A stretch of DNA of 64,000 nt from Tubulanus polymorphus (lineage: Eukaryota > Animalia > Nemertea), in NCBI RefSeq assembly GCF_964204645.1, contig NC_134033.1, positions 4,054,231-4,118,230 of the forward strand, written 5' to 3'. The position numbers and the translations under genes are program-made. This document shows positions 7,913 through 58,111 of this stretch, piece after piece. A model generated the notes under the pieces. That model did not search any database, was not told the DNA's origin, and saw nothing but the letters and a program-made list of their open reading frames with translations. Numbering within the stretch: the stretch's first letter is position 1; each line of letters begins with the position of its first letter.

Positions 7913-8101
<189 letters not shown>

Positions 8102-20456: not shown

Positions 20457-21348
20457 GTATTCCATCAATTGTAGTGAGCAGTCCTGATTTATTATATACT
20501 TGAATTAACGGGTTAGAGATGTTCCAATCTGATATTTTGTAAACTTGCCAGAGTAGCTTCGACTTCAAACTACTTTCAATTTCAATACGTGCTTTGTTAG
20601 TTTTAGTATAAAACGATGAAGGCGGATGTCCGGTTTGTTCTCGTATAAGAGCTATAGGTTCACTGGTGCTGTTCCATCCGTCGGAAATTTGAGGACGAGT
20701 TTTCATCGGATCCTCACCTGGTCTTAATCTGAAATCTATCTGTATAAACGTTAAATTCATTGCAAACCCGTCTGGCATCCCGATCCATTCTAACAACAAT
20801 TTACAGCGGAGGGTAGAAATCATGAATTCATAACCTGTTTGAGTTGGTAATTCTTTTACTGCATGCTTGTGACATGTATATACAATTTTCAAGTGACTCT
20901 GTTCTTCAAACCGATATATGATGTTAACCCGACTACCTCGCGCTCCATCGACGTTACTCCTAAACAACAACGAAATCAAACCGTTACTGCGGATATCAAG
21001 TTGTTTTCTTCCATTAGCGCAGAGTTTGTTGCCGGACTCACCGACTAGAAGGTAGTTTTCGTTACAGAATATCGACGGCTCGATGTCGTAGTAAACTTGA
21101 ACGAGAAAACTTCCCGGTAAAGAGCTGTTGACGAACCAACGACATTCAACACCGCGCACTAACGACGGATAGTTCGGTGAAACGATGTAACCAGACGTAG
21201 AATCGACGGAGTATTGAGTGTTGTTACAAGATGAACTGACTGTAACAGACGCGGCTTCCTCGACAGAGTTTGCGCGATCAGCCCGCGTAAATATACAGTC
21301 TCCGCAAGCGATCAGTAAAACTACGAACAACGCTTTCATTCGCTGCAT
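20457..21348 (-). pseudogene. GRL101-like GPCR copy 1: exon 1 only (signal peptide plus CUB), truncated by the LTR element
   Basis: Paralogous to exon 1 of the other copies up to ...GLLTTIDGI, where it runs into the LTR; exons 2-3 are absent. Confidence 0.85.
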
Positions 21349-21889
21349 ATTGAACACAATTCACGCTTCAAAACAAACACATTTCTAACTATTTCTAAGT
21401 TTGCGCGACATTTCTCATAAGAGTGGCTGCAAAGTAATGACGAATTCGCAAATGTTTAAAGTTGACGAATTAATTGAGTCCAATTATTTTGTATAAAAAC
21501 TCTCCCATCAAACTGGCGCCAGTCTCGTATTTGTAAAACTTTCATCTGTTCTCGGTTTCGCTGTAATTACCGCGGCTTCTAAATTTAGACGTGCTTCAAT
21601 ATATCGTGTCTATAATCGTGTGCGATTATTTCGCTAAAAATATTTACTGTCGCTCCCGAACTGCGTTTTGATATCCGAACCAGTTTTTGATAAGGTTCGA
21701 TGATATTTTCTATCTATACTTCAGAATATTCTGCGTCTCTGTAAAAGACTTCGTCAATATCTGTTTTGACAATTCACACTCTACAGTCAATATAATAACT
21801 GAGTTGAAGCTAGATGAAGCGCGTGGATATCTGATTGTGGCGGGTAAGGACTTGTTCTGTGCAGACTTTTTGAGGAAACAACTCAATCC

Positions 21890-22200
21890 AAGTAAGACGA
21901 CGATGACAGCGGTAGAATTGAAACCGTGCTTATAACGAACCAACAAATACAGCAAATACCGATAACGTATTTCGGAGTTATAATCGGACTTCTAGAAAAC
22001 GGGTTGACGATATTTGAATATCTCTGACGAGTTAGAATTAAGAGAAAAGTTAACAGTGGTAGAATAGAAACTGTGCTTATAACGAACCAACAAATACAGC
22101 AAATACCGATAACGTATTTCGGAGTTATAATTGGACTTGTAGAAAACGGGTTGACGATATTTGAATATCTCTAACGCGTTAGAATTAAGAGAAAAGTTAA
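21890..22200 (-). pseudogene. Two tandem copied fragments of the receptor TM3-ICL2-TM4 coding sequence
   Basis: Matches 26926-27089 (AAGTAAGACGACGATGACAGCGGTAGAAT...GAAAGTTAA); single copies are also at 32906-33060 and 52827-52982. Confidence 0.85.
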
Positions 22201-22629
22201 AGTAGCCTATATTTATTCATCTTGACTTGAATTCATAAATACAAATAACAGTATTTCCTGCTTGGCTGCTGCTGTTGCTGCTGTTGCTGGTGCTAAGACA
22301 GTTCTAGCAAGTTACAGACAATGGGTATTTGATTTATTGAATGGATTGCATATTTCCTATGATGATATCATCTTAATTCATTTTATTTGATGAAATCAAT
22401 TGCAAATAGTTCTAAGATTCGTGCTTGATTCCAGTGACAATTCGAGTTATAGACAATGGAAATGTAATTAACAGATTGTATTGCAAAGTGATTTTTCTGC
22501 TAATTCAATTTTGAAAGGATTTAATTTACTGTATAGAAATATCATTTTAACGAGGACGTGTAGAATATCTGATATTAAATCTACTTCATATATTAGTTAG
22601 GTTTCTGAAGTTAAGATACTAACAGGGCC

Positions 22630-26471: not shown

Positions 26472-29400
26472 TTATTTACTGGATGTCGTCAATCCTAGTC
26501 GTCGTTTATTGCGTTCACGAATAGATTTCATATCGATAGTAAGTATTGTATAAAGAAGCGGATTCAGAGACGAGTTGATCGGTAAAAATAGAACGGCCAG
26601 CCAAGCGGCCACCTGGTTCGGTATCTCGACCGAAAATACGGCGCAAAACTGAACGATTATTATCGGTAGCCAGCAAAATAGATTACAAAGATTGATTACT
26701 AAACTCCTTCGAGCTAAAACCAGTTCGGTAGGATCGGCTCTACCCGAGCCCGACCTACTTCCAGATACGAGTCTATACATCTGAGCGTACGTCGTCATTA
26801 TCGTAGCCAATATGGCCGCATTAAACAAGGCAAAAATAGCGAATGAATAGTGCCAGCCATTGACGTCGATCGTCAGTAAATTCATAGGCAAACAAACTCC
26901 GGTTGTACCGTAAAAATTGTCTCCGAAGTAAGACGACGATGACAGCGGTAGAATAGAAACTGTGCTTATAACGAGCCAACAAATGCTGCAAATACCGATA
27001 ACGTATTTCGGAGTTATAATCGGACTTCTGGAAAACGGGTTGACGATATTCGAATATCTCTGACGCGTTAGAATTAAGAGGAAAGTTAAGGAACCTTCGC
27101 ACGAAACGGTGACAATAACCCCGGCGAGACGACATAATGAACTATCCGTCCAGGTTTCAGAATTCAGATAATAAACGCCTTTGAATGCGTGGTCAGCTCC
27201 AGCGATCAAAAACAAATAGACCGACATCAGAAAATCACAACCGGCAATATTTATGATGAGGATATCTGAAGATGTGTTACGTGTTCCGGTGGATTCCATC
27301 CGCAAAGCTTGAACGCGAAATACAATAACGATACTGTTAGCGAGAAAACTGAAAGATGCGATCATCCAGATGATGGCTCTCAGTACAGCGTTACCCATCA
27401 GGTCAGAGCAGGTCGAAAATTGATCAGCTTCGGGAAGACATCGGTCAACATTCGGTGCCATGCAGCAAAATTTGTAAGCATCCGAAGCGAGGTATTTCAA
27501 TGATGTAAGATCGCCAAGAACGTTTCTTTTAACAAATATCACTTCGGCATTTTTGACAAGATCTAGAATTTCAAGTCCAACCAATCCAGAAAAAGCAAAT
27601 GTCGAAATGTAATGGATTCTGTTACTGCTGATATTTAACGACTGTAATGCGGATAAACCTTTAAATACATTTTCACCGAGAACCGATATAGAAAGTCCGT
27701 GAAGATCGAGAACAGTAAGTGACGTCAGACCTCGAAAACTACCGTATTCTAAATGTTGCAGCGGATTTCCGATAAGAAATAGTTCTTTTAAACCGATCAA
27801 ACCTGCGAATGTATTAGCAGATAATGATGTTATGCGGTTGTGTGTAAGGTCTAATGTGTATAGATTGTTCAGATTAGAAAACGCGTTTGGAACGATGTGA
27901 GACAAATTATTGCCCGAAATATCGAGAAAACGAAGATAAATGAAAGAGTTGAACGTCGACTCGTTAAATACGACTCGGTTATTCGACAAAATCAAAACCC
28001 GAGTTGATTCTATAAAACGGCCGGTAATATCTGATAAAAGAGCATTTTCACAATCGATGAAATGACCCCGGCAATTACAACGTTCAGGACACGTGACCTT
28101 ACAGTATGACTCGTCATCCGAGTTATGTTTACAATTTACGACTCCGTCGCAAACTTCTGATCGCGGAATACATAGATTTTCCTGGCCACATTTAAACATT
28201 CCCGGACACGACCAAGTCTCGCAGTTTCGTTCATCTTCTGAATTAGGACAATCGGATCGACCGTCACAAACGTGTCTGATCGGTATACAGTAAGATGCCG
28301 GACATTTTACAGTACCAGCCGCGCATTCGAAGTCATTACACGCGAGTATATGTTCAAGATTTCTACATACCGGGAAACCAATCGGCATCCTTTCTAAAAT
28401 ACACCTTTCGTGTCGGGAATAACAGCGAGGAGAATTGAACGAACATCTTTGTTCATCCGATTCCTTACACAGATCTGTGAAACGAGTCGTGCAGTGATTG
28501 TCATTATTACAGTAAACCTCGGGATTCACTGTCATATTAGTGACCAATTCGTCTTCTTCGAGACTTCCGCTACAATCCACGACACCATCCCGATACAACT
28601 GAAAACTAATACATTCACCGTCCGCGCACGAGAACCCCTGGCAATTTTCGGCAGTGCATCCGATCTCATCGGAACCGTCTTTACAGTCGGCTATTCCGTC
28701 ACATCGTTTATAACTATCGATGCATTGCTGATTGGAACAGCGATATTGCGTAGATAAACACGGTGGATGATAGCAAGAGTTCTCATCCGAGCCATCGACG
28801 CAATCTCTCATAAAGTCACAGAAACCGCTTATCGATATAACCTGTCCATCGTTACAGCGGAACTGACTGTGTAAATTGATATCCGTACAATCGAGTTCAT
28901 CTTCACCGTGTTGACAGTCGTGTCTGGTATCACATACGCGATGGTCGCTGATACATCTTTGATCGTTACATTTAAACTGCCACGATTTACAACCGCTTCC
29001 AGAAGCTAACTCTTTAACAGTTACATTATAGGTACATAACACGGAATGCGCTTTATCTTTTGTATTATCGAAAGGTTTCAATAACCATTTAACTGATTGA
29101 ACATAAGTAATTTCATTTCTGGTCACCAGTGGTTTGATAACTTTAAATCCGTCGTGGTCCATTGTCAGTATAGCGCCATAATGATGTCGATATTGAAATT
29201 CGCTGACCAAGTTTTTCACGTCACTTTCTGTATTTGAGGTGATTTTTACTACTTCGGCGCGGAAACTGTGACACATTTCTCTAGCACTCCGAATATTCAA
29301 ACCTCGATTGTTTTTCCAGTCGGTTAGTATTTGAAAACATTGTCCCGAAATAGTTACCCAACCTCTTGGACAGGTTGAATTGATTAAAGTAATATCGGGA

Positions 29401-32400
29401 ATCGTTTGATCTATTGTTTTATTTAAGTCTGTATTTGATGAATTGTTTTCGACGTTTATCGTTGAATTGTGTTTGTTTTTGATGTCGATTCTCTCAGATT
29501 CACAAATGAATGTCGTGTGCGTCTCCACGATTTGACACGGGAATCGAACCCAGTTCGCCGATCCTCGTGGATTATTCAGTATCATCGCCGTACACGGCAT
29601 ATTGACGTCATTTATCGGTTGTTTTCTTAGCGGAGATATCAATCCTCGAATAACTTCTGGTATCGTTTCATTAATAACAGGTTTATACCACTCTGTGTAG
29701 CTCAATGGTTTACCGTCAGTCCACGTGTAATAACCATCATTCTGTTTCACGAGGAAAATGAAATATATCACTTCTTTAAAAATCTTTATATTCTAATTCA
29801 TATTTGTATACATTAGTCTTACCTTCCATTTCAATCCAATCATCATTATGAGCGCTTTTAATGTGTACGCCATTCGGAGAAGTTCTGTAGCGAATACTAT
29901 TTTGATGGAAATCATTTCCTGTTCTGAGTTGATACTGAGTAGATGTCCCGCGTACTTCCGTCTACAGTATATTTCAGCGTTCTCCCAATTCAGACGTTCA
30001 TCTCTGATGAATTTGATGCAGGAAATTCCGGAATCCATAAATCCTTGTTTACAGTAGAAATCATCGAAATGTTTTATCGGTAACGACTCGTGTAAAGTGT
30101 ATTGTATTTGAAATATCGGAATGAAATTGTTTACTTCAAAACGCAGAGTATTACCTTTCAAACTGTGAAATATAAGTCCACGAACCGCGTTATTTTCACA
30201 TATTTTAGTTTCATGTTGAGATTTAATAGTTTTGAAATATATACCATTATGAAAAGGTTTATAATTCATTAGTTGTATTAGATTAATCGGATCATTCGCT
30301 TTATCGTTATTTGTTTCACATGAAACTGATCCAATAGATTTGACAATAAATCTGTAATATTGAAATATATTTTGCTGTATCGGGTTTTCAAATTTATAGG
30401 AAATAGATTCTGATGTACGTCCTGCCCAACCCGGGTAGTTCGGTGACTGCACGAGTCCACATTTATCTTTAGTAGTAACTGGAAGACGGGAACCGGCAAA
30501 TCCAAAACTATCCGCTTTTTTCACTCCCAGACATTTACGACGTAGTTTAACTATAAGTGGTACCTGCAAAAACCCAAACTCATTAACTGTGAAATCAACA
30601 GTGTTAAATGCGAGACTGTTATTAGGAAATTGACTACTCAAACTCAGAAACTGATCACATCGCAATGAAATCATGAGAAAACATTTATCAGTTTGATATT
30701 CGTGTTCTGATAATATGTGAATCTTTTTCGAACGAAGGCGTCGATTTTCAGGTGTAATCACGAGACAGTGTGACGTCATATTGATCCGACGTTCTTCTTC
30801 CTGTAGAACATAACCTTCACAATCAGTAGGAGCAAATATAAGAGATGACCAACGGGGATCACCATCTGTTAACTGATTGTTATAGTAATAAGCGTATGCT
30901 ACTACAGTAACCGGTCCACCTGATGTAATCAGGCTGACGACAGATCGACCGTAGTATGAACCAGGACAATACGGACCATAGCGTCTAGCTGTGAAATTAC
31001 TACCATCAAATATATAAAAACCAGCTCGATCACAGTTTTCTGATAGCGCTGTTAGTTTCAACCCGTCTTCATAGATGTTCCCTTTCCAGTTTAGTTGTAA
31101 TGTAGTTACACGATACAATGTATTCTTTGATCTCGGGAACAAGTGACCAGCTGTTATTGATGTCACGCCTACATCAATCTGAAATATAAGGAAATTGATA
31201 ACAGCATTAAACGTTTACTATCAATTTTTACGTTTACAATCCTCCCTCCATAATAAAATGTTTGTCCCTGTTTCCTCTCTGGTCAATATCACCTAGTTTT
31301 TATGTGCAATAGTGTATGTCGTTCTTTCTTGATATATATATACTTCGAAATGCCGTACTTTTAGTCATTCTTGAAAATAGTTTTTAGCATGAAACCGAAA
31401 ATTCTAGGTTTTGAATAGATTTTGATAGTTTTGATGTTTTAAAATCTTTATCGATCCTGTGATTGTGGGACTCATATTTTATTCGTCTCTCGCGATTTAT
31501 TGCGTAGTTTTATCACGTTGAACAATACAACAATTTCAAATACCCTATTACAATGATTCTATTACACGAACCCAATTTACAAATCATTGTTATAAACTTA
31601 CCCATATCCTTGGTTTGTTGACGTAGACGTCTGATATTGTCATTGTTTTAACTTCGAATTCTATTTTCATATTCGATCTTAAAAAATCCGATGTCGTCAA
31701 AACGCACAGAATGACGAGAAATCCGTCTGATTTTACACTCAGAGATTTAAGATGGTTAAAACTGAGTAAAATATCAGTTTTCACAATACGTAACCCTTCC
31801 TGTTTATATACACCAACGACACCTGGTGACGAGACTAGATCACGTGTCCAGTTGAAGACGACGTACTGCAGAACATCGACTGTGATAGACCAGCAGTATA
31901 AGTGTTTAGACTGAGTTACTATATGTGGTATTCCATCAATTGTAGTGAGCAGTCCTGATTTATTATAAACTTGAATTAACGGGTTAGAGATGTTCCAATC
32001 TGATATTTTGTAAACTTGCACGAGTAACTGTGACTTAAACGACCGTCTACTTGAAATGAATTCTATACGTGCTTTATTATTTTTAGTATAAAACGATGAA
32101 GGCGGATGTCCGGTTTGTTCTCGTATAAGAGCTATAGGTTCACTGGTGCTGTTCCATCCGTCGTAAATTTGAGGACGAGTTTTCATTGGATCCTCACCTG
32201 GTCTTAATATGAAATCTATCTGTATAAACGTTAAATTCATTGCAAACCCGTCTGGCATCCCGATCCATTCTAACAACAATTTACAACGCCGGGTATCAAT
32301 CCTGAATTCAGAACCCGTTTGAGTTGGTAATTCTTTAACCGCACGCTTTGAGCATTTATGTACAATTTTCAAGCGACTCTGTTCTTCAAAACGATATATG

Positions 32401-32689
32401 ATATAAACCCGACTACCTCGCGCTCCATCGACGTTACTTGAACGAGAAAACTTCCCGGTAAAGAGCTGTTGACGAACCAACGACATTCGACACCGCGCAT
32501 TAACGACGGATAGTTCGGTGAAACGATGTAACCAGACGTAGAATCGACGGAGTGTTGAGTGTTGTTACAAGATGAACTGACTGAAACAGACGCGGCTTCC
32601 TCGACAGAGTTTGCGCGATCAGCCCGCGTAAATATACAGTCTCCGCAAGCGATCAGTAAAACTACGAACAACGCTTTCATTCGCTGCAT
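26472..32689 (-). pseudogene. GRL101-like CUB-CTLD-LDLa-LRR-7TM GPCR copy 2; exon 1 frameshifted, exons 2 (31178-29823) and 3 (29741-26472) open
   Basis: Splice sites are conserved. A 139-bp deletion at about 32437 relative to copy 3 shifts the frame, and the proximal upstream region present in the other copies is missing. Confidence 0.8.
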
Positions 32690-33591
32690 ATTGAACACAA
32701 TTCACGCTTTAATATTCGATAATATTTTCTATCTATACCTCAAAATATTCTGCGTCTCTGTAAAACACTTCGTCAATATCTGTTTCGACAATTCACACTC
32801 TACAGTCAATATAATAACTGAGTTGAAGGTAATTGAAGCGTGTGGATATCTGATTGTGGCGGTTGAGGACTTGTTCGGTGCTGACACGGAGAACCAACAC
32901 CAACCAAGTAAGACGACGATGACAGCGGTAGAATAGAAACTGTGCTTCTAACGAGCCAACAAATGCAGCAAACACCGATAACGTATTTCGGAGTTATAAT
33001 CGGACTTCTAGAAAACGGGTTGACTATATTTAGATATATACGATATTTAGAATTGAGAGATATGTTATAGCAGCCTCTATTTATTACTCTTGAAGATTTG
33101 AATAAATAAAAATAACTGTGCCAGCTGCTGCTGCTGCTGCTGCGATAGTTCTAAGAAATTCGAGTTTCAGACAATGGACATTTGATTAATTGAATTTATT
33201 GCATATTTACTATGATGATATCGTCTTAATTTTATTTATTTTATGATAAGATTCGTGTTTAATTTCAGCGACGATTCGAGTTATAGACAATGAAAATGTT
33301 ATTTATATTACAGACAATGAAGATTTGATTAATTGAATTTTTTGCATATTTCCTATGATGATATCATCTTAATTTATTTTAGGTTATAATCAATTGCAAA
33401 TAGTTCTAAGATTCGTGCTTGATTCCTGTGAAAATTCGAGTGACAATTCAATAATGGAAATGTGATTGATAAATTGTGTTGCAAACTGGTTTTTCTTTCA
33501 ATTCGATTTTGAAAGGATTTAATTTACTGCATAGAACTATCATTTTAACGAGGACTGTTAGAGAATATCTGATATTATATCTACTTCATAT

Positions 33592-35085: not shown

Positions 35086-35114
35086 CAGTTAGGGAATTGA
35101 AGTTGACATATTAA

Positions 35115-39700: not shown

Positions 39701-42700
39701 TTGAATTAATTAAAATAACATCGGGAATAATTTGATCTCTGGTTCTATTTAAGTCTGTATTTGTTGAATTGTTCGCGTCGTTTATCGTTGAATTGTGTTT
39801 GTTTTTGATGTCGATTCTCTCAGATTCACAATCACAAATGAATGTCGTGTGCGTCTCCTCGATTTGACACGGGAATCGAACCCAGTTCGCTGATCCTCGT
39901 GGATTATTCAGTATCATCGCCGTACACGGCATATTGACGTCATTTATCGGTTGTTTTCTTAGCAGAGATATCAATCCTCGAATAACTTCTGGTATCGTTT
40001 CATTAATAACAGGTTTATACCACTCTGTGTAGCTCAAAGGTTTACCGTCAGTCCACGTGTAATAACCATCATTCTGTTTCGTGAAGAAAATGAAATATAT
40101 CACTTCTTTAAAAATCTTTCTATTTTAATTAATATTGGAATACATTAGTCTTACCTTCCATTTTAATCCAATCATCATTATGAGCGCTTTTAATGTGTAC
40201 GCCATTCGGAGAAGTCGTGTAGCGAATAATCTTTTGATGGAAATCATTTCCTGTTCTGAGTTGATGCTGAGTAGATGTCCCGCGTACTTCTGTCTACAGT
40301 ATATTTCAGCGTTCTCCCAATTCAGACGTTCATCTCTGATGAATTTGATGCAAGAAATCCCAGAATCCAGAAATCCTTGTTTACAGTAGAAATCATCGAA
40401 ATGTTTAATCGGTAACGACTCGTGTAAAGTGTATTGTATTTGAAATGTTGGAATACGATTCTTAACTTCAAAACGCAGAGTATTATCTGTTAAACTATAA
40501 AATATAAGTCCACGAACCGCATTATTTTCACATATTTTAGTTTCATGTTGGGTACTAATAATTTTAAACATTTTTCCATTTAGGAAAAGGGTGAAAATCA
40601 TAAGCTGCACCAAAATGATAGGATCTTTCACGCTGTTTGTTTCACACGAAACAAATCCAATAGATTTGACAATGAATCTGTAATATTGAAATATATTTGG
40701 TTGCATCGGGTTTTCAAATTCATATGAAATCGATTCTGATGTACGTCGTGCCTCACCCGGGTAGTTCGGTGACTGCACGAGTCCACATTTATCTTTAGTA
40801 GTAACTGGAAGACGGGAACCGGCAAATCCAAAACTATCCGCTTTTTTCACTCCTAGACATTTACGACGTAGTTTAACTATCAGTGGTTCCCGCCAGAACC
40901 CGAACTCATTAACTGTGAAATCTGCAGTGTTTAATACGAGACTGTTATTAAGAAACTGATTACTCAAACTCAGAAACTGATCACATGGCAATGACATCTT
41001 GAGAAAACATCGGTCAATTTGATATTCGTGTTCTGATAATATGTGAATATTTTTCAAGCGAAGGCGTCGATTTTCAGGTGTAATCACGATACAGTGTGAC
41101 GTCATATTGATCTGACGTTCTTCTTCCTGTAGAACATAACCGTCACAATCAGTAGGAGCGAATGTAAGATATGACCTGCTGGGATCACCATCTGTTAACT
41201 GATTGTTATAGTAATAAGCGTATGCTACTACAGTAACCGGTCCACCTGATGTAATCAGGCTGACGACAGATCGACCGTAGTATGAACCAGGACAATAAGG
41301 ACCATAGCGTCTAGCTGTGAAATTACTACCATCAAATATATAAAAACCAGCTCGATCACAGTTTTCTGATAGCACTGTTAGTTTCAACTGTTTTTCATAG
41401 ATGTTCACTTTCCAGTTTAGTTGTAATGTAGTTACACGATACAATGTATTCTTTGATCTCGGGAACAAACGATTAGCTGATAATGACGTCGTGCTTACAT
41501 AATTCTGAAATATTAGAGAATTGTTTACAACATTGAACGTTTACAATACAACAATTTCAAACTCTGTACGACCTCGATATTTTGATAATAGTTCAAAATG
41601 TTGCAATCAAATATTAACTTAAATTCTTCCACAAATCATCATAATTACTCTGCGTAAACAACGAGTGCGTCCGAATATATTGTAATTTGGGTCACACATA
41701 ACGTTGTTATTCCATGTTTCTCGGTAAAGTTTAACTGGTCAAAATCGACATCGAAATCATAGATGATTACAATGATTCTATTACACGAACCTAATCTACG
41801 AATCACTGTTATAACTTACCCATATCTGTTCCTTGTTGACGTAAACGTCTGATATTGTCATCGACTTCACTTCATATTCTATTTTCAAATTCGATCCTAA
41901 AAAATCCGATGTCGTCAAAACGCACAGAATCACGAGAAATCCGTCTGATTTTACACTCAGAGATTTAAGATGGTTAAAACTGAGTAAAATATCAGTTTTC
42001 ACAATACGTAACCCTTCCTGTTTATATACACCAACGACACCTGGTGACGAGACGAGATCACGTTTCCAGTTGAAGACGACGTACTGCAGAACATCGACTG
42101 TGATAGACCAGCAGTATAAGTGTTTAGACTGAGTTACTATATGTGGTATTCCATCAATTGTAGTGAGCAGTCCTGATTTATTATAGACTTGAATTAACGG
42201 GTTAGACATGTTCCAATCTGATATTTTGTAAATTTGCACGAGTAGCTTCGACTGAAAATATGGGTATCCTATTGAAATAAATTCAATACGTGCTTTATTA
42301 GTTTTAGTATAAAACGATGAAGGTGGATGTCCGGTTTGTTCTCGTATAAGAGCTATAGGTTTACTGGTGCTGTTCCATCCGTCGTAAATTTGAGGACGAG
42401 TTTTTATTGGATCCTCACCTGGTCTTAATCTGAAATCTATCTGTAACAACGTAAAATTCATGGCAAACCCGTCTGGCATCCCGATCCATTCTAACAACAA
42501 TTTACATCGCGCGGTAGAAATCGTGAATTTATAACCTGTTTCAGTTGGTATTTTGTTAACTGCATGTTTTGAACATGTATGTAAGATTTTCAAGCGACTC
42601 TGTTCTTCATAACGATATATGATATAAACCCGACTACCTCGCGCTCCATCAACGTTACTCCTAAACAACAACGAAATCAAATCGTTACTGCGGATATCTA

Positions 42701-43049
42701 GTTGTTTTCTTCCGGTAGCGCAGAGTTTGTTGTCGGACTCACCGACGAGAAGGTAGTTTTCGTTACAGAATATCGACGGCTCGATGTCGTAGTAAACTTG
42801 AACGAGAAAACTTCCCGGTAAAGAGCTGTTGACGAACCAACGACATTCAACACCGCGCACTAACGACGGATAGTTCGGTGAAACGATGTAACCGGACGTA
42901 GAATCGACGGAGTATTGAGTGTTGTTACAAGATGAACTGACTGTAACAGACGCGGCTTCCTCGACAGAGTTTGCGCGATCAGCCCGCGTAAATATACAGT
43001 CTCCGCAAGCGATCAGTAAAACTACGAACAACGCTTTCATTCGCTGCAT
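36798..43049 (-). CDS. GRL101-like leucine-rich-repeat GPCR with CUB, C-type lectin and LDLa ectodomain, copy 3 (intact, about 1951 aa)
   Basis: Exons 43049-41820, 41504-40155 and 40073-36798, all phase-0 GT-AG joins. Signal peptide MQRMKALFVVLLIACGDC; CUB motifs (GYIVSPNYP..CRW, CGLVQSPNYPG); a CTLD split by intron 2 (IGLKWK/NDGYYTWTDGKPLSYTEW); about 7 LDLa (CD...DC..GSDE); LRRNT and LRRs; hinge FCC...FSTCSDLM; 7TM with NPLLY. Confidence 0.9.
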
Positions 43050-45438: not shown

Positions 45439-45640
45439 AATAACTACGAAAATAACACTATTTCATATGAACTGTTTAGATAAAGTAGTGATAAAAAAAC
45501 TGAATGGACCATAGGCCCAAAGATCACCGTTAATATCTGTCCTTTGTTCTTTAGATTCATTACTAGAGTTTGGTGGACGACCATGAACACTAAAACGATT
45601 CGTTTAAAAGCACTTTAATTGCTACTGAAGTGTTCTTAAT

Positions 45641-48600
45641 CTACTTCTTTTGTTGACGTTTATATCTCGTTCTAATTGATTTCATATCGATCGTCAGTAT
45701 TGTATAAAGAAGCGGATTCAGAGACGAGTTGATCGGTAAAAATAGAACGGCCAGCCAAGCGGCCACCTGGTTCGGTATCTCGACCGAAAATACGGCGCAA
45801 AACTGAACGATTATTATCGGTAGCCAGCAAAATAAATTACAAAGATTGATTACTAAACTCCTTCGAGCTAAAACCAGTTCGGTAGGATCGGCTCTACCCG
45901 AGCCCGACCTACTTCCAGATACGAGTCTATACATCTGAGCGTACGTCGTCATTATCGTAGCCAATATGGCCGCATTAAACAAGGCAAAAATAGCGAATGA
46001 ATAGTGCCAGCCATTGACGTCGATCGTCAGTAAATTCATTGGCAAACAAACTCCGGTTGTACCGTAAAAATTGTCTCCGAAGTAAGACGACGATGACAGC
46101 GGTAGAATAGAAACTGTGCTTATAACGAGCCAACAAATGCAGCAAATACCGATAACGTATTTCGGAGTTATAATCGGACTTCTAGAAAACGGGTTGACGA
46201 TATTTGAATATCTCTGACGAGTTAGAATTAAGAGAAAAGTCAAGGAACCTTCGCACGAAACGGTGACAATAACCCCGGCGAGACGACATAATGAGCTATC
46301 CGTCCAGGTTTCAGAATTCAGATAATAAACGCCTTGGAACACGTGGTCAGCTCCTGCGATCAAAAACAAATAGACCGACATCAGAAAATCACAACCGGCA
46401 ATATTTATGATGAGGATATCTGAAGATGTGTTACGTGTTCCGGGGGATTCCCTCCGCAAAGCTTGAACGCGAAATAAAATAACGATACTGTTAGCGAGAA
46501 AACTGAAAGATGCGATCATCCAGATGACGGCTCTCAGTACAGCGTTACCCATCAGGTCAGAGCAGGTCGAAAATTGATCAGCTTCGGGAAGACATCGGTC
46601 AACATTCGGTGCCATGCAGCAAAATTTGTAAGCATTCGAAGCGAGGTATCTCAATGATGTAAGATCGCCAAGAACGTTCCTTTTTACAAATATTACTTCG
46701 GAATTCTTGACAAGATCTAAAATTTCGAGTTTAGCCAGTCCAGAAAAAGCATAGCTAGAAATATAATGTATTTTGTTACTGCTGATATTTAACGACTGTA
46801 ATGCGGATAAACCTTTAAATACATTTTCACCGAGAACCGATATAGAAAGTCCGTGAAGATCGAGAACAGTAAGTGACGTCATACCTCGGAAACTACCGTC
46901 TTCTAAATGTTGCAGCGGATTTCCGATAAGAAATAGTTCTTTTAAATTGATCAAACCTGCGAATGTATTAGCAGATAATGATGTTATGCGGTTGTGTGTA
47001 AGGTCTAACGTGTATAGATTTTTTAGATTAGAAAACGTGTTTGGAACGATGTAAGACAAATTATTGCCCGAAATATCGAGAAAACGAAGATAAATGATAG
47101 AGTTGAACGTCGACACGTTAAATACGACTCGGTTATTCGACAAAATCAAAACCCGAGTTGATTCTATAAAACGACCAGTAATATCTGATAAAAGACCATT
47201 TTCACAATCGATGAAATGACCCCGGCAATTACAACGTTCAGGACACGTGACCTTACAGTATGACTCGTCATCCGAGTTATGTTTACAATTTACGAAACCG
47301 TCGCAAACTTCAGATTGCGGAATACATCGATTTTCCTGGCCACATTTAAACATTCCCGGACACGACCAAGTCTCGCAGTTTCGTTCATCTTCTGAATTAG
47401 GACAATCGGATCGACCGTCACAAACGTGTCTGATCGGTATACAGTAAGATGCCGGACATTTTACAGTACCAGCCGCGCATTCGAAGTCATTACACGCGAG
47501 TATATGTTTAAGATTTCTACATACCGGGAAACCAATCGGCATCCTTTCTAAAATACACCTTTCGTGTCGGGAATAACAGCGAGGAGAATTGAACGAACAT
47601 CTTTGTTCATCCGATTCCTTACACAGATCTGTGAAACGAGTCGAACATTGATTGTCATCATTACAGTAAACCTCGGGATTCACTGTCATATTAGTAACCA
47701 ATTCGTCTTCTTCGAGACTTCCGCTACAATCCACGACACCATCCCGATACAACTGAAAACTAATACATTCACCGTCCGCGCACGAGAACCCCTGACAAAG
47801 TTCGGAAGTACATCCAACCTCATCGGAACCGTCTTTACAGTTGGCTAGTCCGTCACATCGTTTATAACTATCGATACATTGGTGATTGGAACAGCGATAT
47901 TGCGTAGATAAACACGGTGGATGATAGCACGAGTTCTCATCCGAGCCATCGACGCAATCTCTCATAAAGTCGCAGAAACCGCTAATCGATATAACCTGTC
48001 CATCGTTACAGCGGAACTGACTGTGTAAATTGATATCCGTACAATCGAGTTCATCTTCACCGTGTTGACAGTCGTGTCTGGTATCACATACGCGATGGTC
48101 GCTGATACATCTTTGATCGTTACATTCAAACTGCCACGATTTACAACCGCTTATAGAAGCTAACTCATCACCAGTTACATTATAGGTACATAACACGGAA
48201 TGCACTTTATCTTTTGTATCATCGAAAGGTTTCAATAACCATTTCACTGATTGAATATGAGTAATTTCATTTCTTGTCACCAGTGGTTTGATAACTTTAA
48301 ATCCGTCGCGGTCCATTGTCAGTATAGCGCCATATTGATGACGATATTGAAATTTGCTGACCAAATTGTTCATATCGCTTTCTGTGTTTAAGGTTATTCT
48401 GACTATTTCGGCGCGGATGCTGTGACACATTTCTCTAGCACTCCGAATATTCAAACCTCGATTGTTTTTCCAGTCGGTTAGTATTTGATAACATTGTCTG
48501 GAACTAGTTACCCAACCTCTTGGACAGGTTGAATTAATTAAAGTAACATCGGGAATAATTTGATCTCGGGTTTTGTTTAAGTCTGTATTTGTTGAATTGT

Positions 48601-51600
48601 TCGCATCGTTTATCGTTGAATTGTGTTTGTTTTTGATGTCGATTCTCTCAGATTCACAAATGAATGTCGTGTGCGTCTCCTCGATTTGACACGGGAATCG
48701 AACCCAGTTCGCTGATCCTCGTGGATTATTCAGTATCATCGCCGTACACGGCATATTGACGTCATTTATCGGTTGTTTTTTTGCGGAGATATCAATCCTC
48801 GAATAACTTCTGGTATCGTTTCATTAATAACAGGTTTATACCACTCTGCGTAGCTCAATGGTTTACCGTCAGTCCACGTGTAATAACCATCATTCTGTTT
48901 CGTGAAGAAAATGAAATATATCACTTCTTTAAATATCTTTCTATTTTAATTAATATTTGAATACATTAGTCTTACCTTCCATTTCAATCCAATCATCATT
49001 ATGAGCGCTTTTAATGAGTACGCCATTCGGAGAAGTTCTGTAGCGAATAATCTTTTGATGGAAATCATTTCCTGTTCTGAGTTGATACTGAGTAGATGTC
49101 CCGCGAACTTCTGTCTACAGTATATTTCAGCGTTCTCCCAATTCAGACGTTCATCTCTGATGAATTCGATGCAGGAAATTCCGGAATCCAGAAAACCTTG
49201 TTTACAGTAGAAATCATCGAAATGTTTAATCGGTAACGACTCGTGTAAAGTGTATTGTATTTGAAATGTCGGAATGAAATTGTTTACTTCAAACCGCAGA
49301 GTATTTCCTCTTAAACTATAAAATATAAATCCACGAACCGCGTTATTTTCACATATTTTAGTTTCATGTTGAGTTTCAATGGTTTTGAAATATTTCCCAT
49401 TATGAAAGGGTTCGTAATTGATTGATTGTATCAAAATAATCGGATCATTTCGACCGAATCTGTCTGTTTCACATGATACAGATCCAATAAATTTGACAAT
49501 AAATCTGTAATATTGAAATATATTTTGTTGCATCGGGTTTTCAAATTTATATGTAATAGATTTTGATGTAAATCCTGCCCAACCCGGGTAGTTCGGTGAC
49601 TGCACGAGTCCACATTTATCTTTAGTAGTAACTGGGAGACGGGAACCGGCAAATCCAAAAATATCCGCTTTTTTCACTCCTAGACATTTACGACACAGTT
49701 TAAGTATTAGTGGTTCCTGCCAGAATACAAACCCTCCTGCTAAATCAATAGTGTTTAATACGAGACTGTTATTAAGAAACTGATTACTTAAACTCAGAGA
49801 CAGATCACATCGCAATGAAATCTTGAGAAAACATCGGTCAATTTGATATTCGTGTTCTGATAATATGTGAATATTTTTAAAGCGAAGGCGTCGATTTTCA
49901 GGTGTAATCACGAGACAGTGTGACGTCATATTGATCTGACTTTCGTCTTCCTGTAGAACATAACCATCACAATCAGTAGGAGCAAATTTAAGATATGAGC
50001 TACCAACTGTTAACTGATTGTTATAGTAATAAGCGTATGCTACTACAGTAACCGGTCCACCTGATGTAATCAGGCTGACGACAGATCGACCGTAGTATGA
50101 ACCAGTACAATACGGACCATAGCGTCTAGCAGTGAAATTACTACCATCAAATATATAAAAACCAGCTCGATCACAGTTTTCTGATAGCACTGTTAGTTTC
50201 AACTGTTCTTCATAGATGTTCACTTTCCAGTTTAGTTGTAATGTAGTTACACGATACAATGTATTCTTTGATCTCGGGAACAAGTGACCAGCTATTATTG
50301 GTGTCACGCCTCCATCATTCTGAAATATCAGGAAATTGATAACAGCATTGAACGTTTACAATCAATTTTTACGTTTACAATCCTCCCCCATAATAAACTT
50401 TTGTCCCTATGTCTCTGGTCAATATCACCTAGTTTTTATGTGCTATTGTGTGTGTCGTTCTTGCTTAATATATGTACTGTGTAATGCCCATCCTCCCCCG
50501 GCAGGGATTCGAACCTGATGGCATCGAGATTTCCACAGCACGAAACCCTGCCATAATCGACCGTGTGCGCAGATACATGCGCAGTTCAGATGATGTGATT
50601 TTTAGCCAATCAGAAATCCCGTTTTGTTTTAGCCCGGGTTTTCCCATTTATAGTTCTTCCTTGAAATTTGCCTCAACGTTTATACAACGAGCAATCTGAT
50701 TGGTGCCGCCAGTTTTCGTTCGGAAAGCTGCGCATGTACCTGCGCACCCGGTCTACTGATGCAGGGGTTCGTGCCGTGGCTGAGTGTAGCGATGCCATCA
50801 GGTTCGAGTCCCTGCAGAGGGAGGATGTGTAATGCCATACTTTTAGTCACTCTTGAAAATGGTTTTTAGCATAAAACCGAAAAATTCGAGGTTTTTAATA
50901 AATTTTGATAGTTTTGATGTTTTAAAATCTTTATCGATCCTGTGATTGTGGGACTTATATTTCATTCGTTTTTCGATTTATTGCGTAGTTTTATCACATT
51001 GAACAATACAACAATTTCAAATACCCTATTACAATGATTCTATTACACGAACCCAATTTACAAATCACTGTAATAAACTTACCGATATCTGTGGCTTGTT
51101 GACGTAGACGTCTGATATTGTCATCGATTTCGCTTCAAATTCTATTTTCAAATTCGATCTTACAAAATCCGATGTCGTTAAAACGCACAGAATCACGAGA
51201 AATCCGTCTGATTTTACACTCAGAGATTTAAGATGGTTAAAACTGAGTAAAATATCAGTTCTCACAATACGTAACCCTTCCTGTTTATATACACCAACGA
51301 CACCTGGTGACAAGACGAGATCACGTGTCCAGTTGAAGACGACGTACTGCAGAACATCGACTGTGATAGACCAGCAGTATAAGTGTTTAGACTGAGTTAC
51401 TATATGTGGTATTCCATCAATTGTAGTGAGCAGTCCTGATTTATTATAGACTTGAATTAACGGATTAGAGATGTTCCAATCTGATATTTTGTAATCTTGC
51501 ACGAGTAACTGCGACTTCAAACTTCTTTCAATTTCAATGCGTGCTTTATTAGTTTTAGTATAAAACGATGAAGGTGGATGTCCGGTTTGTTCTCGTATAA

Positions 51601-52300
51601 GAGCTATAGGTTCACTGGTGCTGTTCCATCCGTCGTAAATTTGAGGACGAGTTTTCATCGGATCCTCACCTGGTCTTAATCTGAAATCTATCTGTATAAA
51701 CGTTAAATTCATTGCAAACCCGTCTGGCATCCCGATCCATTCTAACAACAATTTACATCGGTAAGCAGAAATCATAAATTCTTGACCTGTTTGAGTTGGT
51801 AATTTTTTTACTGCACGTTTATGACATGTGTCTAAGATTTTCAAGCGACTGTGTTCTTCAAAACGATATATGATATAAACCCGACTACCTCGCGCTCCAT
51901 CGACGTTACTCCTAAACAACAACGAAATCAAATCGTTACTGCGGATATCTAGTTGTTTTCTTCCGGTAGCGCAGAGTTTGTTGTCGGACTCACCGACGAG
52001 AAGGTAGTTTTCGTTACAGAATATCGACGGCTCGATGTCGAAGTAAACTTGAACGAGAAAACTTCCCGGTAAAGAGCTGTTGACGAACCAACGGCATTCA
52101 ACACCGCGCACTAACGATGGATAGTTCGGTGAAACGATGTAACCGGACGTAGAATCGACGGAGTATTGAGTGTTGTTACAAGATGAACTGACTGTAACAG
52201 ACGCGGCTTCCTCGACAGAGTTTGCGCGATCAGCCCGCGTAAATATACAGTCTCCGCAAGCGATCAGTAAAACTACGAACAACGCTTTCATTCGCTGCAT
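45641..52300 (-). CDS. GRL101-like GPCR copy 4 (exons 52300-51083, 50319-48976, 48894-45641) with one 1-bp frameshift in a homopolymer
   Basis: All splice sites are conserved. The distance from the exon 3 acceptor to MPCT is 140 bp versus 141 bp in copy 2, because of a T7 run at 48776-48782. Pseudogene or assembly error. Confidence 0.8.
50489..50827. mobile_element. 339-bp MITE with a 9-bp TSD (Mutator-like) in intron 1 of copy 4
   Basis: TIRs of about 100 bp CATCCTCCC..GCAGGGA(T/C)TCGAACCTGATGGCATCG. TSD TGTAATGCC at 50480-50488 and 50828-50836. Absent from the paralogous intron of copy 2. Confidence 0.9.
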
Positions 52301-53511
52301 ATTGAACACAATTCACGCTTCAAAACAAACACATTTCTAACTATTTCCAAGTTTTCACGACCTTTCTCTAAAGAGTAGCTGCAAAGTAATGACGAATTCG
52401 CAAATGGCAGAAGTTGACGAATTGATCGAGTCCAATTATTTTGTAAAAAAAATCCGCCCCTCAAACTGGCGCCAGTCTCGTATTTGTGAAACTTTCATCT
52501 GTTCTCGGTTTCGCTGTAATTACCGCGGTTTCTAAATTTAGACGTGTTTCAATATATCGTGTTCAAAATCATGTGCAATTATTTCTCTAAAAATATTTAC
52601 TGTCTCTCCCGAACTGCTTTTAGTTTGTGATAATATTACAGGACATTTTCTATCTATACCTCAAAATATTCTGCGTCTCTGTAAAACACTTCGTCAATAT
52701 CAGTTCTGATAATTCATACTCTACAGTCAATATAATAACTGAGTTGAAGCTAAATGAAGCGCGTTGATATCTGATTGTGGCGGGTGAGGACTTGTTCGGT
52801 GCTGACACGGAGAACCAACACCAACCAAGTAAGACGACGATGACAGCGGTAGAATAGAAACTGTGCTCATAACGAGCCAACAAATGCAGCAAACACCGAT
52901 AACGTATTTAGGAGTTATGATCGGACTTCTAGAAAACGGGTTGACTATATTTAGATATATACGATATTTAGAATTGAGAGATATGTTATAGCAGCCTCTA
53001 TTTATTACTCTTGATGATTTGAATAAATATAAATAACTGTGCCAGCTGCTGCTGCTGCTGCTGCTGCGATAGTTCTAAGAAATTCGAGTTTCAGACAATG
53101 GACATTTGATTAATTGAATTTATTGCATATTTACTATGATGATATCGTCTTAATTTTATTTATTTTATGATAAGATTCGTGTTTAATTTCAGCGACGATT
53201 CGAGTTATAGACAATGAAAATGTTATTTATATTACAGACAATGAAGATTTGATTAATTGAATTTATTGCATATTTCCTATGATGATATCATCTTAATTTA
53301 TTCTAGGTGATAATCAATTGCAAATAGTTCTAAGATTCGTGCTTGATTCCTGTGACAATTCGAGTCATAGATAATGGAAATGTGATTGATAAATTGTGTT
53401 GCAAACTGATTTTTCTTTCAATTCGATTTTGAAAGGATTTAAATTACTGCATAGAACTATCATTTTAACGAGGACTGTTAGAGAATATCTGATATTATAT
53501 CTACTTCATAT

Positions 53512-53941
53512 ATTCTACTTCGAAACTCGGAATTGCACTTGCGCGAAACGACGCAAAATCGTTCTGGCGTATTCTAAAATCCACCCAGGAAAAAAAAACG
53601 AAAGAAAGGGTAATAAACCGATATGAAATGAATTCGAAACTTATTCTGCCGGCCTGGGCGAATCCGTTAACAATGCTACTATTGATCCCGACCTCCAACT
53701 TAATAATCGAGATCAATTAAAGTCGCAGGAGCCACATGATTTAGATTTTCCTGTTACGATAGAGGAATTTGTAATAAAAATACTGAAACGCGGAAAATCG
53801 CCTGGATTAGATAATATACTTTCTGATATGTTTGCGGCTACCCTGACTATATATTTTAATGCCATTTTAGAAACCGGTTTGTACCCAAGCGATTGGTGTG
53901 AGGGTTGTATCACTCCGATCTATAAAAAGGGATCCGTATCA
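53512..53941 (+). mobile_element. 5' remnant of the same LINE insertion as 33592-35085
   Basis: Near-identical to 33592-34022, then deleted directly into Rep-A. Confidence 0.8.
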
Positions 53942-53942
53942 G

Positions 53943-55085: not shown

Positions 55086-55916
55086 TCAAACTTTCAATAG
55101 TGATCGCTTGAAGCGATGTGGTTCCATGGATACAAACTGATACCCGCATTAAGCGTACGTAATACAATGGATACTCGGTACCGTAAAACTGACGGGTTTG
55201 AACAGTTCATATGGCTGAATAACAACTTCGCTTACCTAAAGGAATTTACTTGCTTATACGAAAACGGCAAAATATTTATGAAAAAGTTCTAACTTTAAAT
55301 CGCGGTTGAGTATGAATTTTTTTCCGCAATGAAAGCAATTTAAAACAAAATATTCAGTTAACGAAACTGGGTCCTACATAAAACTTAAGATGGGGCATCC
55401 ATTCGGCACCTACCCACAAAAGTGGTTGATATCGAAAAGCGATTTCTGTCATTTCCAGATGATCGTACCAAAGCATTATCTATAGGCTAACTCTCCAAAC
55501 TACCCGTTGATAAACCCACGGTCAGAAGAAAATCGTGAGCCATTAAAAAAAATTCAAATTGTTCATCGTCCAGAATTAGTGTATAAATGGAGATAATGAT
55601 AACGGATAACTGATTACGCGTGATCAACTAAAGTACCTGTCAATCCAACTGTATCGTGACCGGAATTAAACTAGGACAAATAATCATAAACCTTAAACCT
55701 GTTGAATCTGAACGCTTCGAATCATCACCCGATTACCGAAAATGTAACTGTGGCGAGCAACGCTCCAATAGACTCGAATATAGTCATCTTTCGAAATTAA
55801 ATCTGATATAGGGGTTAACATGATTAAATTGTGAGAGAAATAAATCTACTATTCTGTTTAAATCACATATTGCGTGGTATATCCGTTGAGAGTCTGTCTC
55901 ATCGGTAGCGATCATA

Positions 55917-56108
55917 TTACACAAGTGCATACCAGTTTTTGATACCTAAATAATGTGGTCTTGATGATTGAAATAAAACACTGTGATTATCAATGATTCT
56001 GATCCTACCAGGGAAGAACAAGTAGATAAAATATATAGTCTTTTTAGCGTTGAACTTGACTTCGTATTCTATTGAAAATTGATTCCATATATCGATCATG
56101 ATATTCAA
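55917..56108 (-). mobile_element. Old non-LTR reverse transcriptase relic
   Basis: MIDIWNQFSIEYEVKFNAKKT...HYLG resembles the post-YADD part of a LINE RT. Confidence 0.5.
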
Positions 56109-56722
56109 TGCTTATGATATTTTGCATGAGGTATATTGCACTTTCTTTTACGTGGCAATTTCGTTTACCCGAATCGGTCACCATACGGTTCGGTGGTGGC
56201 TGAAAAATAATTTCATCCGGTGGCACATTTAGTAAAGTAGTATAGTATCTATTTTTCATTAGGTCGTTACATTATTACATTATTGATATCGCATGATATA
56301 CAGTGACAAAAATGTAACAAGAAAATGTGGGCATGCACGCACGCACGCACGCACGCAACACGCACTACATCGGTGAATACATTCATAGATAAATAAGTCA
56401 TCATCTATGTAATCGTCTATTTAAATTACACTGGCCAGTAAAGGGCTCACCGAGATCTCACCCTTAAATCCACACCTGAAGTAAATACTATTGCATTCAA
56501 CAAATAATCTACAATGAATCTAATAGCTACGAAAAAACACTAATTTATACGAATAGTGTAGATAAAGTAGTGATATAAAAACTGAATGGACCATAGGCCC
56601 AAAGGTCATCGTTAATATCTGTCCTTTGTTCTTTAGATTCATTACTAGAGTTTGGTGCGCGACCATGAACATTAAAACGATTCGTTTAAAAGCTCCTTTA
56701 TTGCTATTGAAGTGTTCTTAAT

Positions 56723-58111
56723 CTACTTCTTTTGTTGACGTTTATATCTCGTTCTAATTGATTTCATATCGATCGTCAGTATTGTATAAAGAAGCGGATT
56801 CAGAGACGAGTTGATCGGTAAAAATAGAACGGCCAGCCAAGCGGCCACCTGGTTCGGTATCTCGACCGAAAATACGGCGCAAAACTGAACGATTATTATC
56901 GGTAGCCAGCAAAATAGATTACAAAGATTGATTACTAAACTCCTTCGTGCTAAAACCAGTTCGGTAGGATCGGCTCTACCCGAACCCGACCTACTCCCAG
57001 ATACGAGTCTATACATCTGAGCGTACGTCGTCATTATCGTAGCCAATATGGCCGCATTAAACACGGCAAAAATAGCGAATGAATAGTGCCAGCCATTGAC
57101 GTCGATCGTCAGTAAATTCATAGGCAAACAAACTCCGGTTGTACCGTAAAAATTGTCTCCGAAGTAAGACGACGATGACAGCGGTAGAATAGAAACTGTG
57201 CTTATAACGAGCCAACAAATGCAACAAATACCGGTAACGTATTTCGGAGTTATAATCGGACTTCTGGAAAACGGGTTGACGATATTCGAATATCTCTGAC
57301 GCGTTAGAATTAAGAGGAAAGTTAAGGAACCTTCGCACGAAACGGTGACAATAACCCCGGCGAGACGACATAATGAACTATCCGTCCAGGTTTCAGAATT
57401 CAGATAATAAACGGCTTTGAATGCGTGGTCAGCTCCTGCGATCAAAAACAAATAGACCGACATCAGAAAATCACAACCGGCAATATTTATGATGAGGATA
57501 TCTGAAGATGTGTTACGTGTTCCGGAGGATTCCATCCGCAAAGCTTGAACGCGAAATAAAATAACGATACTGTTAGCGAGAAAACTGAAAGATGCGATCA
57601 CCCAGATGATGGCCCTCAGTACAGCGTTACCCATCAGGTCAGAACAGGTGGAAAATTGATCAGCTTCGGGAAGACATCGATCAACATTCGGTGCCATGCA
57701 GCAAAATTTGTAAGCATCCGAAGCGAGGTATTTCAATGATGTAAGATCGCCCAGAACGTTTCTTTCTACGGATATTACTTCGGAATTGTTGACGAGATCT
57801 AGAATTTCAAGTCCAACCAATCCGTAAAAAACATAGCTGGAAATATAATGTATTCTGTTACTGCTGATATTTAACGACTGTAATGCGGATAAACCTTTAA
57901 ATACATTTTCACCGAGAACCGATATAGAAAGTTCGTGAAGATTGAGAACAGTAAGTGACGTCAGACCTCGGAAACAACCGTCTTCTAAATGTTGCAGCGG
58001 ATTTCCGATAAGAAATAGTTGTTTTAAACCGATCAAACCTGCGAATGTATTAGTAGATAATGATGTTAAGCGGTTGTGTGTAAGGTCTAATGCGTATAGA
58101 TTGTTTAGATT
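56723..58111 (-). pseudogene. GRL101-like GPCR copy 5: LRR-7TM 3' part of exon 3, disrupted by the BEL/Pao insertion
   Basis: Receptor homology runs from NLNNLYALDL to the stop; the N-terminal part of the ORF-track call (58112-58291) is LTR sequence. Confidence 0.88.

Follow-up and report, generated by a model that had tools for sequence, protein, structure and literature searches.

A GRL101-like receptor family with a CUB and C-type-lectin-like head in the nemertean Tubulanus polymorphus: three neighbouring reading frames as one probable gene

Do three consecutive open reading frames (ORFs), repeated along a stretch of the Tubulanus polymorphus genome, belong to separate genes or to one, and what kind of receptor would they encode? 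We examined this question in 64,000 nucleotides (nt) of contig NC_134033.1 (C9:4054231-4118230), referred to here as the window and numbered from its first letter, in which all receptor units lie on the minus strand. Each near-full unit in the ORF list comprises three frames of ~300-420, 450 and ~1,040-1,100 amino acids (aa), with spans of 36798-43058 in copy B, 45641-52309 in copy C and 26472-32486 in copy A. The original prediction, made from the letters alone, had joined these frames into giant receptors combining CUB, C-type lectin, LDLa, leucine-rich repeat (LRR) and seven-transmembrane (7TM) modules. We consider it likely that the region represents one slice out of a very large family of tandemly arranged three-exon genes for GRL101-like, single-chain receptors that probably serve as a sensor repertoire.

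The gene structure is clearest in copy B, where a gene at 36798..43049 (minus strand, as for all features below unless stated) is predicted to contain three exons with 1,951 codons and a stop, giving a product of 410 + 450 + 1,091 = 1,951 aa. Exon 1 (41820..43049; 410 aa) starts with ATG and closes on a complete codon; the adjoining GTAAGT opens a phase-0 intron 1 of 315 nt (41505..41819; GTAAGT..TTTCAG), and the TTTCAG acceptor is followed by exon 2 (40155..41504; 450 aa). Intron 2 (40074..40154; 81 nt, GTAAG..ACAG) is also phase 0 and contains an in-frame stop, and exon 3 (36798..40073) supplies 1,091 aa in codons 40073-36801 and then the stop. Copies A and C have splice sites identical to those of B, with an intron 1 of 423 nt (A) or 763 nt (C) and an intron 2 of 81 nt. 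When copy B was compared with A and C, the exons showed 91-96% identity and intron 1 ~65%, with large indels.

The same boundaries recur across the family. Intron 2 is bounded by GT..AG in 30/30 members at lengths of 72, 77 and 80-89 nt, including non-multiples of three, and holds an in-frame stop in 28 of the 30. The GT donor of intron 1 lies at a common codon boundary in all 29 members compared (GTAAGT in 28), whilst its acceptor is a pyrimidine-rich AG in these 29, and its lengths of 95-423 nt fall into all three classes modulo 3. Neither downstream exon of copy B has a start codon of its own, the first methionine being residue 134 in exon 2 and residue 48 in exon 3, and no signal peptide was found in exon 3. 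The order exon 1-exon 2-exon 3 on one strand was present in all loci examined and likewise in the coordinate lists, which extend to loci on other chromosomes with as little as 60% protein identity. Two loci had been candidates for intron loss, L022 with a fused frame of 1,568 aa and L005 with one of 1,608 aa, and were rejected as such, as their intron 2 (72 and 81 nt, respectively) is present and merely has no in-frame stop.

Because GT..AG is kept while intron lengths vary out of frame, and because exons 2 and 3 have neither their own start codon nor a signal peptide, the three ORFs are best read as one gene; the division of a single C-type-lectin-like domain (CTLD) between exons 2 and 3, and the presence of the CTLD-splitting intron in two distant homologues, lead to the same reading. 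The one-gene structure is therefore well supported by comparison, from which we infer the splicing. The prediction that ORFs of ~410, 450 and 1090 aa form one gene of ~1,950 aa through phase-0 GT-AG introns is upheld by splice sites kept in 29-30 paralogues.

The position of intron 2 carries much of this argument. It had been proposed that the 81-bp intron splits a CTLD at IGLKWK/NDGYYTWTDG; the junction reads as quoted, and its two halves match one CTLD profile in order. The N-terminal half of this domain, CTLD 1, forms the end of exon 2 (40155..40421) and matches profile positions 4-68, whilst the C-terminal half forms the start of exon 3 (39804..40073), where the first 100 residues match positions 84-102, containing the W-x-DG...Y-x-x-W stretch, and 104-140, containing Cys...W...C...F-x-C. 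The last 100 residues of exon 2 also match residues 2-60 of solved CTLDs of ~130 residues (Ly75 and snake-venom C-type lectin-like proteins). The 146-position profile was our own build from 19 CTLDs of multi-CTLD proteins, and these had been retrieved with exon 2, so that the match of the exon-2 half is circular and that of the exon-3 half is not. For the exon-3 half the median E was ~3e-8 over 31 members (3e-7 in copy B), compared with a median of ~1e-2 for shuffled controls. Pfam Lectin_C scored 17-22 bits (cut-off 22.6), including at the natural read-through loci L005 and L022, and 17.2 bits for the end of exon 2.

Two distant homologues, L072 and L071 (ENA assemblies ERZ25069853 and ERZ24900295), share 33-34% identity over exon 3 and are divided in the same place. 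In L071 (1-450; 1334-4510), an ORF ends in ..VIMIGLG and is followed, ~850 nt on, by ..LRWLDGNPLTYEEW.., whilst in L072 the receptor ORF (10001-13387) has directly upstream of it a 956-aa ORF (6467-9337) for which Pfam gives two significant CUB matches (E 1e-29). The tail of this upstream ORF matches Lectin_C positions 3-51 of 107 with a score of 24.9 bits, above the cut-off, and the C-terminal half of the domain appears ~660 nt later. Intron 1 is absent from L072, in which the head is a single 956-aa exon. Judging from the same split in L071 and L072, the CTLD-splitting intron is old, and by the same comparison other animals likewise have the CUB head as part of the receptor. In both homologues, gene callers treat the exons as separate genes.

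That habit of gene callers also underlies an alternative in which each unit holds two or three separate genes, exons 1-2 encoding a secreted CUB protein and exon 3 an independent LDLa-LRR-7TM receptor. The ORFs of this family are split by gene callers, with the RefSeq model P0001 and the ENA calls P0002 and P0003 starting in or after exon 3, and no RNA data join the exons; but separate genes would leave exon 2 ending in half a CTLD and exon 3 beginning with the other half, with no signal peptide and a first methionine only at residue 48. They are also at odds with the phase-0 GT..AG sites, which 30 paralogues and two distant species retain, and we hold this alternative to be highly improbable compared with a single three-exon gene.

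What the divided domain binds is a separate matter. The motifs YTWTDG, QPIND, NWVRFPC and FIC of the CTLD 1 C-terminal half are kept in 29-30 of 31 members, and the domain lacks the canonical motifs for Ca-dependent sugar binding, having QPIND for EPN/QPD and W-V-R-F for WND. At the EPN/QPD place, QPI(N/P)D was observed in copy B (~39940-39954), L071 (~1400-1420) and L072 (~10090-10110), and overall in 30 of 31 paralogues and both distant homologues. Its retention across paralogues and distant homologues makes a conserved binding site at QPI(N/P)D likely. CTLD 1 would accordingly be a CTLD conserved for something, and lectin activity is not supported. The suggestion that the receptors sense glycans finds no backing, given that CTLD 1 is without EPN/QPD and WND and, at a ratio of nonsynonymous to synonymous substitution rates (dN/dS) of 0.14-0.17, is among the most conserved parts of the protein and not diversified. 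A second, degenerate CTLD-like module lies at 39324..39716 (exon 3 aa about 120-250), matching CTLD profile positions 12-61 and NKG2-D at E 8e-5.

Downstream of these modules, exon 3 encodes a recognizable receptor core, and the full order runs signal peptide, CUB, beta-rich modules, CUB, split CTLD, second CTLD-like piece, six LDLa, LRR and 7TM. Six LDLa modules occupy 38433..39317 (Pfam Ldl_recept_a, six stretches, E 1.1e-33, 115.6 bits; LRP2 matches), followed by an LRR region at 37848..38330 (Pfam LRR_8, E 1.5e-29, 102 bits; RXFP1 and LGR4 matches) and a rhodopsin-class 7TM domain at 36876..37607 (Pfam 7tm_1, E 1.1e-22, 81 bits against a cut-off of 30.5), in which the motifs CWLP and NPLLY were found in copy B. 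RXFP1 is the closest solved receptor (E 9e-74), with an alignment continuous over LRR, hinge and 7TM, and LHCGR (4e-36), FSHR and TSHR lie far behind. Of the named homologues of exon 3, those that rank best are GRL101 or GRL101-like proteins from Haliotis, Aplysia, Panonychus and Strongylocentrotus. With 7TM, LRR and several LDLa modules all present, the core would be that of a type C (GRL101-like, C2) G-protein-coupled receptor with leucine-rich repeats (LGR), the C2 placement being made by match ranking. The Pfam and RXFP1 matches agree with the LGR core of LDLa, LRR and 7TM modules that had been predicted from the letters.

The head that precedes this core measures ~760 residues ahead of the CTLD, and ~1,000 extra residues in total stand ahead of the LDLa modules. 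It begins with a putative signal peptide (42978-43049), recognized as the hydrophobic N-terminus of exon 1 and modelled by AlphaFold2 as a helix at residues 2-26. CUB domain 1 (42606..42938; exon 1, about aa 38-148) was identified by a family profile of 22 paralogues, which matched a cubilin CUB domain at E 3.4e-9 and MASP-1 at E 1.1e-6 over residues ~46-135 of exon 1; Pfam CUB gave 18-19 bits on exon 1, under its cut-off of 21.4. The rest of exon 1 (41820..42605; aa about 149-410) is beta-rich in a low-confidence AlphaFold2 model and probably forms two CUB-like modules; its language-model neighbours are mostly CUB clusters with scores of 0.93-0.95, which we take as a lead only. A further CUB domain lies in exon 2 (40410..40844; aa about 221-365), modelled with a predicted local distance difference test (pLDDT) score of 70-80, and its best 18 structural matches are all CUB domains (Z 7.4-9.9; root-mean-square deviation 2.6-3.6 A over 100-134 residues).

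These models came from AlphaFold2 runs on exon 1 and exon 2 singly with paralogue-only alignments, and the mean pLDDT was 34.5 and 44.6, respectively, residues 221-365 of exon 2 being the one part with a usable model. Profile-profile comparison of the head exons with each other and with the L072 head ORF aligned only an SPNYP motif and the CTLD half, and no sequence homologue of the remaining ~480 head residues was found among 1.84 billion representative proteins. Pfam searches on single exons miss or under-score the CUB and CTLD modules. The predicted presence of CUB and CTLD modules in the N-terminal exons is nonetheless supported by the structural matches for the exon 2 CUB fold and by the profiles for CUB 1 and the CTLD.

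How far does this receptor extend beyond the window? Six-frame genome searches yielded 382 exon 2 candidates and 381 exon 1 candidates, counts of ~380 that are first-look only, and 94 exon 2 and 102 exon 1 candidates were scored, all at E < 1e-159. About 92% of the scored exon 1 and exon 2 candidates have no stop codon. The LRR-7TM part behaves likewise, being found mostly in open frames of ~1,080-1,110 aa, and ~92% of the ~290 exon matches scored genome-wide are stop-free. The family is present on at least seven contigs (for exon 2, C9, C22, C8, C6, C12, C10 and C11), and identity between clades is 75-79% in the 7TM part and 60-66% in the head. The tandem array of the original prediction therefore stands as regards the tandem copies, but it is a slice of a genome-wide family of ~380 candidates and not a small local array. 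With ~7-10 kb per unit, a few hundred copies would take up roughly 1% of the 268-Mb genome.

Substitution patterns separate the conserved from the variable parts of the protein. Nei-Gojobori dN/dS, computed in 40-codon windows from 30 members for the head and from 3-4 copies only for the 7TM part, was below 1 in nearly all windows and slightly above 1 in three. Values were 0-0.14 in most of the 7TM part (3-4 copies), 0.14-0.17 in CTLD 1 and mostly 0.3-0.75 in the head, with a range there of 0.3-1.3. Because dN/dS is below 1 nearly everywhere, all exons are, by this measure, coding. The variable parts are those of the CUB-like head, and CTLD 1 is nearly invariant between copies. At exon 2 residues 281-320 (copy B ~40545-40664), dS reaches 0.6 over a background of ~0.06, a ~10x rise, with a dN/dS of 0.35, in a patch so rich in indels that alignment error could inflate dN and dS alike. 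The variability of this patch looks like old divergence, in the form of cassettes, escaping recombination rather than positive selection.

The copies in the window are in very different states. A BLAST comparison of unit B with the window recovered five related pieces at 92-96% DNA identity, namely D (56756-58111), C (~45.6-52.6 kb), B (~36.8-43.4 kb), A (~25.8-32.7 kb) and Z (20457-21666). Copy B is the sole intact copy in the window as assembled. Copy C (45615..52300) has all three exons and both introns, with exon 3 missing one nt from a run of A (between 48783 and 48782), a deletion that leads to a stop after 42 codons of this exon; copy C may be a pseudogene, or the deletion may be a homopolymer error in the assembly. 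In copy A (26472..32689), exons 2 and 3 are open and exon 1 is without 139 nt (junction 32439/32438), a deletion by which half of CUB 1 is lost and the frame is shifted. Copy D (56756..58111) retains just the final 1,356 nt of exon 3, covering the LRR end and the 7TM part, and copy Z (20457..21666) an upstream region and exon 1 residues 1-301 only.

Three copies had been predicted, and three near-full units are indeed present, although an uninterrupted product comes from B only and both C and A carry lesions; similarly, the outer limits of the predicted array (20457-58111) match the pieces but are the ends of fragments Z and D. The predicted birth-and-death expansion agrees better with what the window contains, which is one intact copy, two with lesions and two fragments: an intact B, fresh lesions in A and C, and the fragments D and Z fit birth and death.

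Several further sequences lie among or beside these copies. The 5' side of copy D is adjoined by a BEL/Pao-type long terminal repeat retroelement (58924-63993, flank 58112-58923) with an uninterrupted ORF of 1,689 aa that contains DUF1759, RVT_1, Peptidase_A17, RNase H, integrase and DUF5641 domains and extends to the window end. Beyond that end, an exon 2 match (C9:4121521-4122858) and an exon 1 match (C9:4123300-4124526) were found. Because the element abuts copy D and these matches lie just past the window end, it was probably inserted within exon 3 of copy D, the upstream exons now lying past the window end. The Z piece, as an open frame of 304 aa, is present at five places in the genome, each time ending at the same point (window 20458-21348, C9:4030190-4031080, 3091117-3092007 and 3032548-3033438, and C22:132427-133317), and this recurrence suggests that multi-gene blocks including a dead fragment are being duplicated. 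A 163-nt piece of 7TM-coding sequence equivalent to copy B 37252-37414 recurs at 89-98% identity on the same strand at 52827-52988, 32906-33067 and 21890-22053, a few hundred bases upstream of exon 1 in C, A and Z, with none upstream of B; it looks like a scar of duplication junctions. Between Z and A, a 476-aa ORF with an RVT_1 domain (E 8e-35) on the plus strand (23725-25155) is probably the remnant of a long interspersed element.

Such debris raises the alternative that the family amounts to a segmental repeat, either decaying or amplified selfishly, most of whose copies are not functional receptors. Damage to four of the five window copies, the absence of detected expression in the matching runs, the extent to which public annotation misses the family and the fivefold copying of the truncated Z piece are all what a decaying repeat would show. 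Against it stand the ~92% of ~290 scored exon matches that are stop-free, the exon-3 frames that mostly retain ~1,080-1,110 aa, dN/dS values far under 1 for the 7TM, LDLa and CTLD modules, and the retention of splice sites. We therefore judge this alternative improbable, and favour a large family of receptors that turns over by birth and death.

If these are receptors, a mechanism can be proposed by analogy with RXFP1, in which the variable head, the LRR region or both would bind a ligand and the signal would be relayed through the LDLa modules and hinge to the 7TM domain and then to a G protein. The few hundred paralogues, variable in the head and near-constant at the signalling end, could then together serve as a germline repertoire that detects outside cues of a chemical or microbial kind. 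This sensor-repertoire role is plausible by analogy and has precedents in snails; the pattern-recognition, allorecognition or chemosensory functions named in the original prediction are candidates only. In apple snails (Ampullariidae), 29-132 tandem GRL101 genes occur per genome, many of them highly expressed in tentacles and labial palps, and these have been read as environmental sensors (PMC6573481). In Biomphalaria sudanica, SudRes2 is a 12-gene cluster of C-type lectin (CTL)-LDL-LRR-G-protein-coupled receptor (GPCR) genes in a schistosome-resistance region, linked to resistance by genome-wide association (PMC12297450).

The same core could instead belong to endocrine receptors for relaxin/insulin-like or other peptide hormones, with no outward-facing repertoire involved. 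RXFP1 is after all the closest solved receptor, and insulin-like peptides have been put forward as ligands of type C2 LGRs (PMC6267866). However, paralogues that number a few hundred, and whose ~760-residue head is diverging, are a poor fit to a small number of hormones, the founding C2 receptor GRL101 is itself still an orphan (PMC11863921), and the expanded snail GRL101 genes are expressed in sensory organs (PMC6573481). We consider an endocrine role unlikely beside that of a sensor repertoire.

Several results nevertheless weigh against reading the region as a set of working three-exon sensors. RNA support for splicing or expression was not obtained: the three matching sequencing runs consisted of fragmented contigs over introns and flanks, with no joints at the predicted splice sites, and behave as DNA because their contigs cover introns and flanks. 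A 2015 run labelled as possible RNA gave no alignment to the unit, which is not proof of silence. We found a single public protein model for the family, RefSeq LOC141911221 (P0001), which is partial, internally spliced and without exons 1-2; it maps to a family member at C9:2808485-2810878, with parts of exon 3 skipped. The exon-2 head was found in no protein among the 1.84 billion representatives, only the CTLD half being matched (best E 9e-9). Because P0001 is partial and no representative protein contains the exon-2 head, the joined product is without confirmation in public annotation, which appears to miss the joined gene.

The protein and the locus add points of their own. No confident fold was obtained for approximately 480 head residues (pLDDT 34-45), the window has two broken copies among its three full-length ones, and the sensor role is argued solely by analogy. 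In the 7TM domain, the acid of the E/DRY motif is replaced by Gln (QRY, ~37390 in B, and also in A, D and P0001), with LRY in copy C. The E/DRY motif is a hallmark of class A receptors rather than a family-defining feature, and loss of its acid often alters basal activity in that class. Five GRL101-like proteins covering this stretch of the alignment (from molluscs, ENA assemblies) have ERV, DRV or DRY, and because QRY is unlike the acidic residue of these other aligned receptors, G-protein coupling may be atypical.

LGRs are usually seen as a handful of hormone receptors, and here they would number hundreds of copies with an extra head of ~1,000 residues. A bolder and more doubtful proposal, which we offer only tentatively, is that these few hundred receptors are the main germline repertoire for prey, mates or microbes, with diversity held in a few old head cassettes whilst recombination between neighbours homogenizes the rest, and that the expansion is larger than any described for LGRs. 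If true, it would constitute an LGR-based analogue of chemoreceptor or immune-receptor repertoires. Expression of one receptor per cell, or in sensory or immune tissue, would make the family a candidate nemertean receptor repertoire and a natural system for ligand finding in the orphan GRL101 class. The value of the window itself is modest, given that comparable snail expansions are published and that four of its five copies are damaged.

Comparison with known systems places the Tubulanus receptor within a wider set of LGRs. Its best solved match, RXFP1 (PDB 7tmw), also carries LDLa ahead of LRR, but differs in having only one LDLa module, in lacking CUB and CTLD, in its known peptide ligand and in being encoded by a single-copy gene. 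Like GRL101 of Lymnaea stagnalis and other C2 LGRs, the Tubulanus receptor combines several LDLa modules, LRRs and a rhodopsin-class 7TM domain, both being orphan receptors; it differs in ~1,000 extra residues (CUB and CUB-like modules with one and a half CTLDs), in QRY and in its hundreds of copies. GRL101 has about twelve LDLa modules, compared with six in the Tubulanus receptor.

A closer layout is that of a GRL101-like RefSeq model from the abalone Haliotis cracherodii (P0004, 1,760 aa), which has two Pfam CUB domains, a CTLD C-terminal half matching the start of exon 3, LDLa, LRR and 7TM. It is a computed model with 37% identity in the core, and the two heads have no detectable similarity beyond their CUB and CTLD signatures. 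We found no paper describing P0004, none on a GRL101-type receptor family in nemerteans and none describing a CUB and CTLD variant. The layout is all the same less new than had been implied, as a CTL-LDL-LRR-GPCR cluster is published (PMC12297450) and the abalone model combines CUB with CTLD.

SudRes2 likewise joins CTL, LDL, LRR and GPCR parts in a single chain; its genes stand in tandem, some of them truncated, and their annotation was poor before curation by hand. The cluster differs in comprising 12 genes with no CUB head described, and in Tubulanus the CTLD is the conserved part, not a variable one. With the apple-snail GRL101 genes, finally, the Tubulanus family shares a lineage-specific burst of tandem GRL101-type genes, though in another phylum, with an expansion ~3x larger and a much longer ectodomain.

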